Virus record (IMG/VR): IMGVR_UViG_3300050014_000823
Coordinates: 1-64,000 of that record
Length of the DNA stretch: 64,000 nucleotides
Strand: one strand, 5' to 3'
Under the pieces are notes generated by a model. The model searched no databases and had not been told where the DNA came from. It saw only the letters and a list, made by a program, of their open reading frames with translations. Shown here piece by piece: positions 1-6,066 of this stretch. A program made the position numbers and the translations under genes. The stretch's first letter is position 1. Each line of letters starts with the position of its first letter.

Positions 1-5
1 CACGA

Positions 6-326
6 TTGAGTAAAAGTATTCGTGCTTCGATTGGTACTTGGAATTGGAAGTATTGGTTAAAGAGACTTGAAATGCAGTGTGAATTAAACCGTGTTTCGTT
101 CAGAACTGTTAGTCCTTATTATACCAGTACGACCTGTCCAGCATGTGGTCATTCCAATCGGGGGAACCGAAATGGAGAGAAGTTCTTATGTCAGAATTGT
201 GGTCACGCTGACAACGCAGATGTTAATGCAGGTAAGAACATTTTGAATCGGTTTCTCACGGGACAATACGGTGCTCGTTACAAACAGGAAAATCAAGAGA
301 ATTTAGTTGTTACTAATTTTTTGTAG
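6..326 (+). mobile_element. tnpB: 3' end of TnpB-like (IS200/IS605 or IS607) RNA-guided nuclease gene, truncated by window edge
   Basis: SPYYTSTTCPACGH..NRNGEKFLCQNCGHADNADVNAGKNIL = zinc ribbon plus RuvC-III typical of TnpB C-termini; ends in TAG. Confidence 0.85.
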
Positions 327-332
327 ATTTTT

Positions 333-566
333 ATGAACGGTCATTATGGTTTCTCTCTTGGTAATCCAATTATTCCCGAATGGTGTAAAATTATCGACAA
401 AATATTGGAACTATGTGTTGCAACTGACCCTGAGTTTCAAATATGTCAAGTAAAAATCAAATTCGGCACAGTACATTTCAATGTTCATAGTGAAATTATT
501 GAAGATTGTCACGATGTGGATAGGTTGATAATGAGCACATTATTTGACCGAGCATTAATTTATTGA
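333..566 (+). CDS. hypothetical phage protein, possibly 5'-truncated by the upstream element
   Basis: ORF with QVKIKFG motif resembling common phage QVKEKFG proteins. Confidence 0.5.
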   Translation: MNGHYGFSLGNPIIPEWCKIIDKILELCVATDPEFQICQVKIKFGTVHFNVHSEIIEDCHDVDRLIMSTLFDRALIY

Positions 567-572
567 CTTTTT

Positions 573-602
573 TGTAACATTTTTTGAGCATTTACGTATA
601 AT
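573..602 (+). promoter_or_regulatory. ECF-type promoter TGTAAC-N16-CGTATAAT
   Basis: match to motif repeated about 27 times; ATG at 608. Confidence 0.75.
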
Positions 603-607
603 CACGT

Positions 608-1340
608 ATGAAAAAGTTACCAATCATAGAAATCACCGAACTATTCCTGGTCAAATCAGGATGGGATAGGACATTCGTTGGTCAGATAATCAGAGAAACT
701 GACGAAGATGGTCTATCAACTGTCCGTGGCAACGTTGTTGTTAACGAAGGAATGATTTGGAGTGCTGCAAACACGCAGGACGAACTTGGAAATAATCTTG
801 ACGATATTTGTACAATGAAACTCGACATGAACCTTCACGATAATGTTGGTGTCAGAACTGTTGTGGCAAATACAGCATTTTTTATGAATTAAATGAAAGA
901 TTTTGAATTACTCAAGCGTACTTATCCAGTCAGTGAATTTGACCGTCCTTGTGATGGTTACGATTATATTTTAAAGAATAGTACTGAGGAAGAAAGACTG
1001 GAATGGGGAGTTAAAATGGATGAGTTGCAGAGGGTAATTAAGACAGGCGAAAAGTATATGTATCAAGTGGCAAGAGAAGGACAGTCATTCAGAACCATGT
1101 ATTTATGCTTTACAAATTATGCGATAATAAGAAAATATATATTCAAACTGGAAGATGAGTAACACTGATGAAAGATATCGACAATATGTCGATAACTGCA
1201 AGAAGCAACCCCGCAGCTTTGGAGATTGGCTGAGAGTCACAACTATGTTTATACATCATCGTGAAATCATTAGACCTATGATAATTTGGTGGCAAGATTT
1301 AAGAAAAACAGAAGGACTTCCAAATCCCAAATTAAGATGA
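608..1340 (+). other. three short hypothetical CDS (608-892, 893-1162, 1155-1340)
   Basis: abutting or overlapping ORFs downstream of the promoter. Confidence 0.65.
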
Positions 1341-1379
1341 AACCGAAAAACAACATAAAACTTTACGATACCGTAAGAT

Positions 1380-1452
1380 GCTTCCGTGACTGAATGGTTA
1401 AGGTGTCAGACTCTAAATCTGATTTGTGCAGGTTCGATTCCTGTCGGAAGTA
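1380..1452 (+). tRNA. amber suppressor tRNA, anticodon CTA (1413-1415)
   Basis: acceptor GCTTCCG/CGGAAGT, D loop with GG, anticodon stem TCAGA/TCTGA with loop CTCTAAA, T arm GCAGG-TTCGATT-CCTGT, discriminator A; no encoded CCA. Confidence 0.92.
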
Positions 1453-1473
1453 CAAAAATAATTGATAATTTGC

Positions 1474-1522
1474 TTGGAGATTAAAAATATTGTAGTAATT
1501 TTGCTCGTCATACAGTATTTAT
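1474..1522 (+). promoter_or_regulatory. tandem promoters: Bacteroidota-type TTG-N19-TAATTTTG (1474-1503) and GTATTTAT motif (1515-1522)
   Basis: both motifs recur upstream of other genes in the window. Confidence 0.55.
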
Positions 1523-1559
1523 ATATCTACGACAATTATTAACAATTAAATTTACGATT

Positions 1560-1910
1560 ATGAAGTAGGTTAAATTAGTAACAGTAACAAGAAAAGACCT
1601 GGATGCAGGTTACCAATTAGCGCAGACTATACACAGTAGTAGTCGATTTGCGTATCATTATCCCGAACTACATCGGGAATGGATTGAAAAATCCGAATAT
1701 GTTGTATCACTTTCCGTGGACAACGAAGAATCCCTCAATGACCTTTATAACAAATTAAAAAGCAATGGTGCTATTGTTGTGGCTTTTCATGAGCCAGACA
1801 TACAGGACCAGTTGACTTCTATTTGCTATTATGGTACGCCAGTAATGCGTAAGCATACGCAGAAGTTAGACTTAGCACTCAAAGAAGTTGAAGTCGCAAC
1901 TAAAAATTAA
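1560..1910 (+). CDS. peptidyl-tRNA hydrolase Pth2-like protein with in-frame TAG at codon 3 (116 aa on readthrough)
   Basis: ATG AAG TAG GTT AAA... gives MK*VKLVTVTRKDLDAGYQLAQTIHSS...WIEKSEYVVSLSV...FHEPDIQDQLTSIC; RKDL..G..AQ..H and EPD....T motifs of PTH2-like proteins; in frame with track ORF 1716-1910. Confidence 0.85.
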
Positions 1911-1932
1911 ACCCGCAATTAAATTTAAGACC

Positions 1933-1968
1933 ATGAAGCCATACTTATAGATTATCCGACCCCCATAA
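1933..1968 (+). CDS. putative leader peptide MKPYL*IIRPP with internal TAG
   Basis: ATG AAG CCA TAC TTA TAG ATT ATC CGA CCC CCA TAA, preceded by a CAATTAAATTTA initiation region like that before 1560. Confidence 0.55.
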
Positions 1969-2078
1969 TGGTGTGATTATTACCGAATTCGCAATTCGCA
2001 AATTGCGAATCAACCACAAAATCAATAAATTACACGATAAATTAACAATAATTAACAAATAAATAAATTTACACCAAT

Positions 2079-2519
2079 ATGGAAACAACAGTAAAATCAA
2101 CAAAAATGACATCACACGATAGTGCTGATTTAATTAAAGGTATTGAAACCGCCTTAGACGTAGTTCTTGAAAAGGTTACAGAAGAAGATTGGAATCTTCC
2201 ACTCATTAGTATTGACGACAAAAACTTAAATGCAAGAGTCATTCACATGACCTTAAACCAGAGAAAGAAATTAAAAAATAAACTCAATGGTTGTATATAT
2301 AAGAAGAGTCTGAGAGCAATAAACACCTTCTTACATTTCTTACACAGACATGTGCTTGAAGAAAAAACTCCTGCTCCGGAAGTCCGTATTTCTGAGAAGG
2401 AAGTTAAAATCCAAGCAACTCGTAAGAAATACGTGGAAGCACGAAACCTTGCAATAAAATTGTACAAGGAATATAAGGACGAAAAGGGCGATTTTTACAA
2501 AAAGAAAATGGCTAAATAA
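2079..2519 (+). CDS. hypothetical basic protein
   Basis: 146 aa ORF with A-rich leader, followed by terminator. Confidence 0.75.
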   Translation: METTVKSTKMTSHDSADLIKGIETALDVVLEKVTEEDWNLPLISIDDKNLNARVIHMTLNQRKKLKNKLNGCIYKKSLRAINTFLHFLHRHVLEEKTPAPEVRISEKEVKIQATRKKYVEARNLAIKLYKEYKDEKGDFYKKKMAK

Positions 2520-2523
2520 TAAT

Positions 2524-2555
2524 AAAGGGGGAAAATATTAATCCCCCTTTTTTTA
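2524..2555 (+). terminator. intrinsic terminator
   Basis: AAAGGGGGA...TCCCCCTTT plus T tract. Confidence 0.8.
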
Positions 2556-2624
2556 TTTTTCCTTGCATATTTACTACGGATTGTGTAGTTTTACGCAAAA
2601 TAATTTTATTTTAAAAACCGAATA

Positions 2625-3077
2625 ATGTCAGGTACTACAATTCAAACCGATAATGACCGTGGAGTAATTTTCACACCAAAAGAAGAAATAAGTGTAAAGT
2701 CAGTATTGACTCCCGAAGAATTACAAGCAAAGTTACCTAAAGACGTAGAACTCCTTGAGAGTGATGCCGAAGTCGAAGGTAAATTAATGGATGGTATGGA
2801 AGAACTTGCTAAAGACCTCACGGATGAGGAAAAGAAAGCCATTTACATTCAACAATTAAAAGAGTCTCACATAAGATTCAAACCAATTAAACATGGCGTT
2901 ACGAAAAGTGTTGTTGTTGGTACAGAACCTACGTTCTATGGTAGAAAACGTGTTCTGAGAAGCAAAGGAATTATAACAAATGTAACAACCAATCAGTTCG
3001 ATGCAGATTATCGTAAGAAGCGTCAACGTAAAAATAAAATGGCGAAAGCCAGCCGAAGGTTAGCACACAAAAAGTAA
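2625..3077 (+). CDS. hypothetical protein with basic C-terminus
   Basis: 150 aa ORF. Confidence 0.7.
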   Translation: MSGTTIQTDNDRGVIFTPKEEISVKSVLTPEELQAKLPKDVELLESDAEVEGKLMDGMEELAKDLTDEEKKAIYIQQLKESHIRFKPIKHGVTKSVVVGTEPTFYGRKRVLRSKGIITNVTTNQFDADYRKKRQRKNKMAKASRRLAHKK

Positions 3078-3865
3078 TGGGTGACAATACAGGATATTCC
3101 TTAGAAGGAAACGGTATGGACTTATCTAAATTAGGTCCAAACGGCAACTATTTTGCAGGTTCTGCAATAACAACCACATTCAATACAAACTACATGCAGG
3201 TCATTCCTAATAGTCACTATTATAGTGATTTAAATCAGTTGGTAACATACCTTGGCTATATACAAAGTTCGGGTAATCAATGGTATACTGCTTGGAGTGC
3301 AGAAGTCGAACAACTTATCATCGGCTTAGAAAATACAATCAAAAATGGTTATAAAATTAAAATGGTTGGTGATTCGGAACTTGATTTTAACGAAAGACCG
3401 TATCATGTTTTTATGTCAGTTGAAAGTATGATTGCTTTTATTAAGGATGTTGATATTAGTGCTGATTATAATGCCAATGAATTTTTAAAAGACTTTATCA
3501 TTGCGATTGAGAATACTAAAAAAAGTGGATATAATTTAACAAACGGATTAAAAATGGAAAGAAAAGAGATTTACAACCGTCTTGATGGCGAAAGAGATTA
3601 TCAGGACAAAAATTGGGGTTCACGCAGACAAATGGACGGAACACCTGATGAAGAAAAACCAGTTGCTGAGTGGATTAACTACATAGAATATCACTTGGCA
3701 AAAGCTAAAGAAAAAGTATATCATCTTGATACAGGTGGTGCTACTGATGAGTTACGTAAAGTTGCTGCACTTGCAGTACGTGCAATGGAAATTCACGGTT
3801 GTCCCCCAAGAGGCGGTACACCTGTTGTTGGTGGTGAGAAGCCATCGTGCGATTGCAAAAAATAA
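3077..3865 (+). CDS. protein with C-terminal MazG-like NTP pyrophosphohydrolase domain (possible internal start 3554)
   Basis: ERDYQDKNWG...EW..YIE....KA...DELRKVAALAVRAME all-alpha NTP-PPase pattern. Confidence 0.6.
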   Translation: MGDNTGYSLEGNGMDLSKLGPNGNYFAGSAITTTFNTNYMQVIPNSHYYSDLNQLVTYLGYIQSSGNQWYTAWSAEVEQLIIGLENTIKNGYKIKMVGDSELDFNERPYHVFMSVESMIAFIKDVDISADYNANEFLKDFIIAIENTKKSGYNLTNGLKMERKEIYNRLDGERDYQDKNWGSRRQMDGTPDEEKPVAEWINYIEYHLAKAKEKVYHLDTGGATDELRKVAALAVRAMEIHGCPPRGGTPVVGGEKPSCDCKK

Positions 3866-4000
3866 TATTACAATAACGGAAAAAATGACAAAATTCTGGA
3901 AAACACTTGGCGTGATATTCGAATGGATTATGAATATCATATTTGCTGCCATACTTTTTGGTGGCGGTGCATGGTGCATATGGGAAATGTTTATTAAGTA

Positions 4001-4563
4001 ATGGAACAACTTGTTGACTTAAATAATACGTTCTGGGATAGACTTCAAGAATACGTGACTGACTTACGTGTAGATGCACGATGGGTATTACGTGGACTTA
4101 CTGACAAAAAATCTTATGGTTCACTGAGAATCGTGTCACATCCGGACTTACCGCCTGGACAACTTCGTGCATTCTTCACGTATGTTATGACCATTAAACC
4201 TAAGACTAAGGAACAGAAACTCAAGGCGATTGAGGACTACCAAATGGAAATAACCGAAATGGAAGTTTACTCGATTAACGATGACATTAAGACCGAAACA
4301 CAGACTTATGTAGCACCATTTAAGGAACTTGAAGAAATGTTCGGTGTAAAAGTATTTGGAAAATGAAAAAAGAAATAGTAGAACTACTTGTCGATAACAC
4401 GGGTGTTTCAACAGAGCAAGCAACTATTATTGCAAGAAAAATAGATAGACTTTATAAGCAGAGTCATATAGACCTACTTAAAGAATTTATCGAACACCCA
4501 ACTAAGCCGGGTTATAAGCGACATGATATTCTCGATAGAATCAAAAAGTTAGAAAATAAATAA
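4001..4563 (+). other. two hypothetical CDS (4001-4366, 4363-4563)
   Basis: coupled ORFs. Confidence 0.65.
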
Positions 4564-4577
4564 TAAAACAGAATAAA

Positions 4578-5489
4578 ATGGCAAAAAAAGAGAACGATTT
4601 AGTAAAAGAAGTATTAATGGAAAATCAAGAAAAAAAGGAAAAAGAAAAGGACTACAGTGCTGTTACAGGCAAGGGTGGTGGCTTACGCTTTAACAAAGGT
4701 AAACTGAGATACGACTTGGTTGAACCACGAGCATTTGAAGACTTCGTTCAGGTGCTTACCGATGGTGCAAACAAGTACTTCGACAGAAACTGGGAACGTG
4801 GTTTATCATGGACCTCAGTTCTGGCTTCACTTAAAAGGCACTTGGCTGCCATTGAAAAAGGTGAAGACTATGATAAGGAAAGTGGTCGCTTACATATTGC
4901 TCACGCAGCTTGTAACGTACATTTTCTCAATGCATTCTACTATAGCTTTCCACAGGGTGACGACAGACCTAAAAGGTTCTTAAACATCCCTAAAATCGGT
5001 CTGGACATTGATGGAGTGCTCGCTGATTGGACAGGTGGATGGGCAAAAATTTATCCCGAAGTTTCAGCAACACCATATTCTTGGTATTTTGACAGAGTTG
5101 TTGGTAAGCGTTTCAAAGCAATGGAAGCTGCAGGAACTCTCGATGAATTCTATATGAATCTTGAACCTCTGATGCAAGCAAAAGACTTAACTTTCGAGCC
5201 ACACTGCTATATTACATCACGTCCTGTTTCACAAGAAATCTCAGAACAATGGTTGGATAAACACGGATTTCCGTCAAGACATGTTCACAGTATTCAGATG
5301 GGTGAAAGTAAAGTGGATGTAGCCAAAGCTGCAGGTGTTGAAATATTTATTGACGATTCATACGAAAATTTTGTTGCCTTAAACAACGCAGGTATATGTA
5401 CATACCTGTACACAGCATCTTGGAATACCAAACATGATGTTGGTCATCTTAGGCTTAACTCGCTGAATGACTTGCCGTTGCTGAAGTAA
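4578..5489 (+). CDS. dATP/dGTP diphosphohydrolase (DUF5664-like) fused to HAD 5'-nucleotidase (NT5C-like)
   Basis: GKLRYDLV..GANKY..RNWERG..SLKRHL...D.ESG.LHIAHAACN plus IGLDIDGVLAD..ITSRP..FIDD. Confidence 0.85.
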   Translation: MAKKENDLVKEVLMENQEKKEKEKDYSAVTGKGGGLRFNKGKLRYDLVEPRAFEDFVQVLTDGANKYFDRNWERGLSWTSVLASLKRHLAAIEKGEDYDKESGRLHIAHAACNVHFLNAFYYSFPQGDDRPKRFLNIPKIGLDIDGVLADWTGGWAKIYPEVSATPYSWYFDRVVGKRFKAMEAAGTLDEFYMNLEPLMQAKDLTFEPHCYITSRPVSQEISEQWLDKHGFPSRHVHSIQMGESKVDVAKAAGVEIFIDDSYENFVALNNAGICTYLYTASWNTKHDVGHLRLNSLNDLPLLK

Positions 5490-5577
5490 AAAATTTGCAT
5501 GTTTTTTGTAGTAATTATAGACTAACCGTCATTTGTGAGTATTTATAAATGACGGTTATTATATATAAAGCAAAATC

Positions 5578-6066
5578 ATGGGAAATATTTTTGAAGACAT
5601 AGTTCAGGACGTTGAGGTAAAGCCAAGTAAATCAAAACTTGTACTTAAATGGGTTGTTAGAATAGCGATACTGCTAATTTGTGGTGCATTTGTATTTGGT
5701 CAACTCAAAATAAAGAGTATGAACAAAGTAAATACTTTTGAAAAATCACTACAAGAAAATACTGAAGCAATTAAAGATTTAAACAAAAAGACAGAAGAGG
5801 GTTTTAAGGCGGTTAATGGTAGAATAGATAAGGCATATGATGATGGAAACAAGGTGTTTAACGATTGGACCATATTCAACAAAGACCAACTTAAAATGGT
5901 TATAGACTACGGGCAGACAAATAAAGAAATGTTGAAAAGAATGCTTGATTTAAATGTTACAGAAAAAACCAAATCTGTTGAAAATCAGGTTGAACAAGCA
6001 AAAAAGGACACAAGTACTTACAATTCAAGAATTATTGTAAAGCCAGTTATTAATCCAAAGAAATAA
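5578..6066 (+). CDS. single-TM coiled-coil membrane protein
   Basis: hydrophobic WVVRIAILLICGAFVFG segment; GTATTTAT at 5539. Confidence 0.7.
   Translation: MGNIFEDIVQDVEVKPSKSKLVLKWVVRIAILLICGAFVFGQLKIKSMNKVNTFEKSLQENTEAIKDLNKKTEEGFKAVNGRIDKAYDDGNKVFNDWTIFNKDQLKMVIDYGQTNKEMLKRMLDLNVTEKTKSVENQVEQAKKDTSTYNSRIIVKPVINPKK

Follow-up and report, generated by a model that had tools for sequence, protein, structure and literature searches.

A short leader open reading frame (ORF) in the phage record IMGVR_UViG_3300050014_000823, hereafter the mini-ORF, probably is a translational attenuator that takes nonsense suppression as its input. The mini-ORF, which encodes MKPYL, an in-frame TAG, IIRPP and a final TAA, is located in the window analyzed here, namely, the first 64 kb (64,000 nucleotides) of the 299,144-bp IMG/VR record, 35% G+C, between a gene for a Pth2-like peptidyl-tRNA hydrolase and a gene that we denote X (Table 1). 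In the mechanism that we favor, readthrough of the internal TAG would bring the ribosome to the R-x-P-stop end of the mini-ORF, where it would stall and, by stalling, unmask the start codon of X. The basis for this entire interpretation is comparative and thermodynamic evidence. Comparison of sequences yields the ORF itself, the conservation of its amino acids, the agreement between its internal stop and the anticodon of a neighboring tRNA, its linkage to X, and a covarying helix that joins the two; from these, we infer the arrest of the host ribosome at R-x-P-stop and the activation of X by that arrest.

An ORF of 11 codons is, by itself, uninformative at 35% G+C, and the significance of this one comes from its conservation. 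The preliminary description of this DNA, which was made from the letters of the window alone, had read an ORF at 1933-1968 with TAG as codon 6 and the ending CGA CCC CCA TAA, and this is exactly what the sequence contains (ATG AAG CCA TAC TTA TAG ATT ATC CGA CCC CCA TAA, with the internal amber codon at 1948-1950, the R-P-P codons at 1957-1965, and the final stop at 1966-1968). It had also proposed a check of homologous loci for peptide-level conservation of the xxRPP segment that follows the internal stop, and such conservation is apparent among 35 distinct mini-ORFs. In each of four relatives found through their Pth2 genes, there is an ORF of 11 codons that fits ATG AAR .. .. TAG .. .. .. 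(C/A)GA CCN CCA TAA. When IMG/VR was scanned with a degenerate mini-ORF pattern, 28 matches were obtained, of which 24 are in frame and give ORFs 36 or 39 nt long; a Pth2 homologue was detected by tblastn in all 24 of these loci, and a tRNA-CUA gene lies within a few kb in nearly all of them. The four out-of-frame matches have neither Pth2 nor tRNA-CUA. The same pattern run against 596 Gb of prokaryotic genomes, which served as the empirical null, matched 41 times, with lengths distributed flatly over 33-39 nt, and two of these 41 matches, both on short contigs of metagenome-assembled genomes, are accompanied by Pth2 and tRNA-CUA. As judged by this comparison of sequences, the mini-ORF is not due to chance.

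The 35 distinct versions conform to the general formula M-x(1-5)-STOP-[IVFM]-x(0-4)-R-[P/S/G/A]-P-stop, and the form is also present, as MS*SRPP* (asterisks denote stop codons), in the 735-kb huge-phage genome LR756501. The Arg codon is AGA in 26 versions, CGA in six, AGG in two and CGC in one; the penultimate residue is Pro in 27, encoded by all four codons, Ser in five, Gly in two and Ala in one; the last Pro is encoded by CCA (23), CCT (7), CCG (4) or CCC (1); and the final stop is TAA in 34 and TGA in one. The mini-ORF is 11 codons long in 24 of the 35, with the peptides ranging from 7 to 13 residues, and in 27 of the 35, the final stop comes six codons after the internal one. The changes in the Arg and Pro codons being synonymous, the codon comparison indicates that the peptide past the internal stop is conserved at the amino acid level. 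Leaders of this type were found at 33 loci among the 63 distinct Pth2 loci that are described next.

The gene immediately upstream of the mini-ORF belongs, as far as can be judged from its sequence, to the Pth2 family and is a predicted hydrolase: the window protein scores 25.9 bits against PF01981, with a cut-off of 23, and among solved structures, the family profile finds archaeal and human Pth2 (2zv3, E 8.6e-10; 1q7s; 1wn2). The third codon of this gene, at 1566-1568, is TAG, and upstream of 1716 the gene offers no other start codon. The genome (299 kb) has a single tRNA gene, likewise the only match in an Rfam search of positions 1-6000; its anticodon is CUA, so that both the amber suppressor (1380-1453) and the Pth2 gene (1560-1910, TAG at codon 3) that the preliminary description had taken for granted are in place. 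A search with the Pth2 profile A1, a selection blind to the mini-ORF, produced 80 further loci and, with the window included, 63 distinct Pth2 proteins. An early in-frame stop occurs 1-9 codons past the Pth2 ATG in nearly all of them, TAG in 59 of the 63 and TAA in two, with none in the remaining two. Among 61 distinct starts, 60 have a purine as the first nucleotide of the codon after this stop, and in 55 of the 61, that codon is ATT, GTA, GTT or ATA, a preference similar to that in the mini-ORF.

The identity of these stops tracks the anticodon of the tRNA. Wherever a suppressor tRNA was found in the flank, it is CUA at the early-TAG Pth2 loci (42 of 42) and UUA at the two early-TAA loci, L046 and L063 (2 of 2), and leader and Pth2 carry the same programmed stop in 33 of 33 cases (31 TAG, 2 TAA). 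In the phage genome, TAG is a minority stop, terminating 17 of 226 long ORFs, compared to 175 for TAA and 34 for TGA, and therefore, the uniform presence of TAG in the leader is not a compositional effect. At the level of sequence, this covariation of stop and anticodon is the strongest evidence that the neighboring tRNA decodes these stops; the tRNA is presumed to be charged and active in suppression. Most of the TAG-containing ORFs in the genome have the TAG at an ORF boundary, and only in Pth2 does a TAG that comes a few codons after the ATG lead into a long ORF without a nearby later start; a search for further gated ORFs with TAG in the [A/G]T[A/T] context gave no excess over TAA and TGA controls. 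Genome-wide recoding of TAG (code 15) was considered and is ruled out by the TAGs at ORF boundaries, the 17 TAG-terminated ORFs and the restriction of this layout to Pth2. The phage thus uses the standard code, and because the genome is not recoded, we treat the two TAGs, in Pth2 and in the leader, as local, programmed suppression sites. The host probably is a member of Bacteroidota, given that the phage start codons lack Shine-Dalgarno sequences and that the nearest cultured relative infects Tenacibaculum; searches of sequencing runs matched the phage DNA in peat metagenomes.

The mini-ORF is connected to the start of X by a long-range helix, which we denote P1. Across loci, positions -10 to +4 of the X AUG find their complement in the last Pro codon, the final stop and the 6-13 nt that come after it. 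In the window, P1 dominates the minimum free energy (MFE) fold, at -26 kcal/mol (z -4.65; none of 200 shuffles did as well), and RNAalifold, applied to 14 loci, predicts P1 and no other helix. With the register fixed, 348 of 464 positions pair in 29 loci, compared to 162-232 in slid registers; when the P1 partners were permuted between loci in 2000 trials, the mean was 316 and the maximum 341, below the observed 348. At positions 4, 5 and 7 of the helix, GC, AU, UA and GU pairs are all seen, and in the single leader that ends with UGA, the G pairs with a C at position -1 of the X AUG (AUC-AUGG). Single-sequence folds recover P1 in 26 of the 29 loci. At L042, a local hairpin, TCATGG/CCATGA, which mimics the X start sequence, is present instead, and this locus may follow a different or inverted logic.

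The position of P1 relative to the mini-ORF fits a switch that discriminates between the two stops. Counted from the nucleotide that opens the P site, a ribosome is established to cover approximately 15 nt of the mRNA ahead. If it paused at the internal TAG (P site at 1945), its leading edge would come to about 1959 and the helix would remain intact; one positioned at the final stop, with its P site at 1963, would cover approximately 1963-1978, that is, the masking strand. When the footprint at the final stop was blocked, the energy of the window fold changed from -25.3 to -12.0 kcal/mol. The unpaired probability of the X AUG rises by at least 0.1 with a ribosome at the final stop in 21 of the 29 loci, and with a ribosome at the internal stop, it stays near the free-RNA value in most loci, L042 being an exception. 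In these models, then, a helix that sequesters the X start overlaps the predicted stall site, as in leader-peptide translational attenuators, and the window also has the other attribute of such attenuators, a short same-strand ORF immediately 5' of X with no terminator between the two.

Gene X follows the mini-ORF on the same strand in all 29 loci that were inspected for it, with a gap of 58-147 nt. In most of the relatives, however, the protein encoded in this position belongs to a 112-residue family that is not detectably related to the 146-residue window protein (hhalign probability 0.3). The start context ATT ATG GAA ACA is common to both families, and because two unrelated families share it, the start region of X seems to be a part of the regulatory module rather than of the gene body. 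At loci where mobile genes, homing endonucleases or others, are inserted, the mini-ORF remains with X, up to 850 nt from Pth2; in Tenacibaculum phage pT24, where the gated Pth2 is present, X and the mini-ORF are both absent. It is X, therefore, that we take to be the gene regulated by the leader, as its consistent position in the compared sequences suggests. X was not found in any cultured phage, and an IMG/VR search with X as a single protein retrieved no relatives, these having been found via Pth2. Searches of Pfam, PHROG, PDB and AFDB gave no assignment for X, and structure prediction followed by fold searches gave no informative match for either family (predicted local distance difference test scores of 80 for X_win and 92 for X038).

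Put together, the proposed mechanism is as follows. The single tRNA of the phage, with its CUA anticodon, would decode two nearby programmed TAGs, codon 3 of Pth2 and codon 6 of the leader. In the free mRNA, the two strands of P1 (1963-1981 and 2062-2082) would pair and hide the X AUG. Without suppression, a release factor would terminate the leader at the TAG, so that the helix would stay closed and X would be off. With suppression, the ribosome would proceed to R-P-P-TAA, a sequence that resembles RAPP-type arrest motifs and Pro-stop termination stalls, and, stalled on the masking strand, would expose the X AUG for repeated initiation. A stalled ribosome that holds the start open for many initiations would amplify a weak suppression signal. 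Both X, via the leader, and Pth2, via its own early stop, would thus depend on the phage suppressor tRNA.

In its layout, the mini-ORF resembles the RAPP-like (RQH) arrest peptides ApdA, ApdP, ApcA and SecM (PMC10987492, PMC10951233, PMC7897499), in which Arg is located two positions before the P-site Pro, the arrest position follows, and a small ORF lies right upstream of the controlled gene. A minimal RxPP is sufficient for arrest (PMC10951233), and RAP*, NSP-stop and NAP-stop leaders stall, as the mini-ORF would, with a stop codon in the A site; RAPG leaders are present in Bacteroidales (PMC10987492). Set against the pattern (R/Q/H)-(A/G/D)-(P/G/S)-(P/G), the Arg and the P-site Pro of the mini-ORF fit, the middle residue fits in 3 of the 35 versions, and the fourth position is a stop, as in RAP* alone (PMC10987492). 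Unlike the RAPP-like leaders, the mini-ORF codes for only 7-13 residues without a signal peptide or membrane anchor, is encoded by a phage, and contains an in-frame stop that would have to be suppressed; its middle residue is mostly Pro or Ser, not Ala, Gly or Asp; and it shows no association with sec or yidC genes (secA, secDF, yidC), the downstream gene being the 146- or 112-residue X.

The output side of the proposed switch is that of the ermCL/ermBL, cat, cmlA and secM-secA leaders, where a stalled ribosome likewise holds one strand of a helix that sequesters a downstream start. There, however, the trigger is an antibiotic or a secretion defect, whereas here it would be the passage of an internal stop by a suppressor tRNA, and P1 differs from those helices in being long-range: the 60-140 nt that it closes into a loop harbor further hairpins. 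The input side is reminiscent of trpL, hisL and pheL, leader ORFs that report the availability of one charged tRNA via regulatory codons; in the phage leader, the regulatory codon would be a stop and the tRNA a phage suppressor, shortage of which would lead to termination and release rather than a pause, and there is no terminator/antiterminator pair with a U-tract such as those in trp-type attenuators. In TnaC, as proposed for the mini-ORF, the P site is occupied by peptidyl-tRNA(Pro) when the ribosome arrests at the stop codon, and an Arg is nearby. TnaC, with 24 residues, requires free tryptophan, maintains the conserved W12/D16/P24 spacing and acts through Rho, whereas the 11-residue mini-ORF peptide lacks a conserved Trp or Asp. 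Nearest in design are the AMD1 C-tail and an engineered switch. Readthrough of a stop codon followed by arrest at the next in-frame stop is known for the AMD1 C-tail (PMC13025110), which, unlike the phage leader, is eukaryotic, follows a full-length coding sequence (CDS), limits output by ribosome queuing and has no dedicated suppressor tRNA. The engineered one, an unnatural-amino-acid switch with UAG in the tna leader (reviewed in PMC6412442), is synthetic and transcriptional, whereas the phage element is natural, widespread and, apparently, translational. Finally, stop-recoded phages with code 15 or 4 (Borges et al., 10.1101/2021.08.26.457843) share with the window phage a suppressor tRNA, low G+C and rare TAG stops, and regulation of gene expression by suppression has been proposed for them in the same work; the window genome differs in that 17 of 226 long ORFs end with TAG and only two neighboring ORFs contain a programmed TAG.

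Several observations weigh against the attenuator mechanism and keep us from putting it more strongly. For arrest without a cofactor, a chain of 11 residues is very short, and most proteins with RAPP-like motifs do not stall, and the upstream residues matter (PMC10987492). Pairing in P1 accounts for part of the conservation of CCA-TAA, the codons for Arg and the first Pro alone being outside the helix. At 3 of the 29 loci (L042, 3853-3900; L117, 5352-5451; L082, 3335-3404), P1 in its expected register is either weak or missing, and in the footprint-blocked window fold, the AUG can weakly re-pair, through a marginal 5 bp, with positions 1939-1943, where CCAUA occurs a second time. The mini-ORF is missing from about half of the Pth2 loci. 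A promoter for X may also lie within the AT-rich loop.

The same input, readthrough followed by stalling, could instead have a transcriptional output. As in the case of TnaC, the stalled ribosome might block Rho on a G-poor spacer, or else it might disturb the hairpin at 1987-2010, acting as a terminator, so that the polymerase would read into X. That hairpin, a perfect one with a CGCA loop, was reported in the preliminary description exactly as it occurs, and it is unique in both the window and the genome. Hairpins follow most of the mini-ORFs, the spacer 2011-2078 contains one G and many C and A, TnaC likewise stalls at Pro-stop, and the engineered UAG-in-tna-leader switches act transcriptionally (PMC6412442). 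We nevertheless regard a transcriptional output as unlikely. Unlike the true terminator 500 nt downstream, the hairpin lacks a U-tract; it begins 18 nt past the stop codon, outside the footprint of the stalled ribosome; the G-poor spacer is not general, the spacers of the 29 loci being simply AT-rich (C 370 vs G 320); and a transcriptional output has no need of a covarying helix that buries the X AUG. None of the leader-loop hairpins is followed by a U-tract, and in the window, there is no T-run after 2010. A terminator scan gave nothing between 1968 and 2079, and scans for sigma-70 promoters and terminators gave nothing specific in 1910-2079. The canonical terminator that closes the unit, a layout repeated after X in L002 and L005, carries a U-tract, which indicates that true terminators at this locus have one, unlike the structure at 1987-2010. 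Control is most likely exerted by translational unmasking of the start codon rather than by transcription termination. The earlier proposal that amber readthrough leads to a stall that is coupled to control of the gene at 2079 finds comparative support in the conserved peptide, the match of stop and anticodon, and the linkage of X to a covarying helix; the perfect hairpin, however, is not the attenuator; it lacks a U-tract and is contained in the loop of the start-masking helix.

Alternatively, the mini-ORF might be a source of peptidyl-tRNA, analogous to the lambda bar minigenes, with its drop-off products being a substrate or sensor for Pth2. Short nascent chains are prone to drop-off, as the lambda bar-pth interaction illustrates, and minigenes of the bar type, with 2-6 codons, sequester tRNA as peptidyl-tRNA and are toxic when Pth is limiting. 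The mini-ORF adjoins Pth2, with 4-25 nt between the Pth2 stop and its ATG in many loci, and both ORFs begin with M-K-x-x-stop-[I/V]. By length, only the unsuppressed product of the leader, with its 4-5 residues, would fit the bar model, and when insertions separate the neighbors, the mini-ORF keeps with X, as much as 850 nt away from Pth2, whereas pT24 has the gated Pth2 without either. Given that this scheme also leaves the covariation in P1 and the fixed six-codon spacing unexplained, we find it highly improbable, and the related idea in the preliminary description, that stalled peptidyl-tRNA is made for Pth2, gained no support from these loci. That there is no readthrough at all, the mini-ORF being an upstream ORF of 4-5 codons that ends at the TAG, or untranslated, with the part downstream kept as an RNA structure or a protein-binding DNA motif, strikes us as least probable: P1 does constrain CCA-TAA and the bases that follow, the palindromes resemble operator half-sites, and a motif resembling AGACCACCAT occurs upstream of tRNAs in some relatives, outside an evident mini-ORF, but the Arg and first Pro codons, which lie outside P1, vary only among codons for R and for P/S/G/A, the frame and length are kept where the TAG shifts by one codon (window vs L002), and the internal stop follows the tRNA, as a plain terminator codon would not: despite the prevalence of TAA as a stop, all 31 CUA-type loci have TAG here and both UUA-type loci have TAA.

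The attenuator mechanism leads to a broader proposition, to which we would give about even chances, that in jumbo phages with the standard code, an orphan suppressor tRNA is a dedicated trans-acting switch, not a decoding aid, which licenses Pth2 directly and X via a stop-gated arrest leader. Many large standard-code phages carry suppressor tRNAs without known targets; in the XacN1 genome paper, no target genes could be identified for the suppressor tRNA (PMC5852040). The module described here offers concrete, conserved targets in dozens of huge phages. If the proposition holds, expression of Pth2 and X would signal that the host has produced, matured and charged the phage tRNA, and the mechanism would be that of a tRNA acting as a gene-specific translational activator. 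Among natural leader peptides, this one would then be the first known to respond to nonsense suppression, an arrangement arrived at independently in synthetic biology (PMC6412442), and the RAPP-like arrest modules would come to include very short peptides, encoded by phages and stalled at a stop codon. The module, conceivably, may represent a step between standard-code and recoded phages. Full-text literature searches retrieved no description of it. For annotation, the practical rule is that the Pth2 genes of these phages begin upstream of an in-frame stop codon.

Table 1. Features of the suppressor tRNA-Pth2-leader-X region (window coordinates).
Feature	Coordinates	Strand	Evidence
Amber-suppressor tRNA, anticodon CUA	1380..1453	+	ARAGORN; Rfam tRNA, 62.9 bits
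Pth2-like peptidyl-tRNA hydrolase gene, start ATG AAG TAG	1560..1910	+	Pfam PF01981; profile match to Pth2 structures
Leader mini-ORF, MKPYL-TAG-IIRPP-TAA	1933..1968	+	35 distinct versions in related huge phages
P1, 5' strand: last Pro codon, stop codon and next 13 nt; predicted to mask the X start	1963..1981	+	MFE fold, RNAalifold, covariation
Perfect 10-bp hairpin, loop CGCA	1987..2010	+	Inverted repeat; inside the P1 loop
P1, 3' strand: 17 nt upstream of the X start, AUG (2079-2081) and next G	2062..2082	+	Same folds and covariation
Gene X, 146 aa, all-helical	2079..2519	+	Homologues or unrelated 112-aa family after the mini-ORF in 29/29 loci
Canonical intrinsic terminator, GGGGG...CCCCC then T-run; closes the unit	2527..2554	+	Inverted repeat I1; sequence

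The arms of the hairpin in the loop of P1 are ATTCGCAATT (1987-1996) and AATTGCGAAT (2001-2010), and the segment as a whole can be read as two direct copies of ATTCGCA and then one inverted copy. The palindrome has a single match in the window with up to 3 mismatches allowed, compared to 0 in 100 shuffles. Its core, CGCAAATTGCG, has one further copy in the genome, at 104716, and the possibility that the hairpin is a repeated genomic element or operator was dismissed because the core occurs only once more in 299 kb. The hairpins 3' of most other mini-ORFs are strong (mean z -2.6; z < -2 in 69% of 36) and differ in sequence from clade to clade. The arrangement of two direct arm copies and one inverted copy is also present after the mini-ORFs in L063, L067, L088, L089, L098 and L114, with arm sequences unrelated between clades, and suggests either alternative pairings or three protein-binding half-sites. 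The hairpin may be a scaffold that shortens the loop so that P1 closes, or a protein-binding site.

The window phage, with its single tRNA, differs from many of its relatives, in which arrays of 8-25 tRNAs surround the same module, and the suppressor tRNAs are not all alike between clades. In pT24 (L115, LC168164.1), at 3448-4400, homology to Pth2 starts upstream of the annotated CDS BPT24_235, right after ATG AAA TAG; this CDS is annotated from an internal ATG, and a tRNA-Sup gene is located 2.5 kb upstream. Judging from this homology, BPT24_235 is probably annotated too short. In L071, from 3842, and L081, from 3818, a second gene right after Pth2 also begins with ATG AAR TAG ATT and, therefore, some clades seem to have more than one directly gated gene. 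In a peat metatranscriptome (run X12; window 1560-1694), only fragments of the 5' parts of relatives' Pth2 genes were found, 90-97% alike and including the ATGAAGTAG start; these contigs are a weak hint that the gated Pth2 is transcribed, with DNA carry-over possible.

Two short motifs precede the gated ORFs. The first, AGTATTTATA, is found at 1514-1523 of the window, approximately 40 nt 5' of the Pth2 start, as well as upstream of Pth2 in L002, L003, L005, L008, L018, L029 and L033. In L003 and L029, it also stands ahead of the gene that comes after the mini-ORF. This motif is possibly a promoter element, of either a phage or a Bacteroidota type. The second, CAATTAAATTTA followed by 5 nt and ATGAAG, stands ahead of both gated ORFs in the window (1543-1565 and 1916-1938), is particular to this genome, not being seen in the relatives, and may reflect a local duplication or a common initiation context.

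Some loci show rearrangements around the mini-ORF. In L043 (~4650-4727) and L048 (~4610-4685), an upstream ORF runs in frame into the mini-ORF and terminates at the mini-ORF TAG; the C-terminus of its product resembles that of the endonuclease-like gene of L036 (3826-4766). In L036, this endonuclease-like gene is inserted between the mini-ORF and X and has acquired the ATTATTATG start region. A conserved element of ~110 nt, with TAGACCA and GGTG(A/T)TAGACCACCAT, is located just 5' of tRNA genes in L071 (4440-4554), L075 (4290-4375), L081 (~4470-4550), L092 and L100; it resembles the 3' end of the mini-ORF and contains no evident ORF.

Elsewhere in the window, positions 6-326 (+) encode the C-terminal TNB/zinc-finger domain of a TnpB/Cas12f-like protein (PF07282, E 2.8e-18), which is truncated by the start of the record and terminates at TAG. 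At 4578-5489 (+), an N-terminal dATP/dGTP diphosphohydrolase domain (PF18909) is fused to an NT5C-type 5'-nucleotidase, a combination that probably has a role in the nucleotide pool or in DNA modification.

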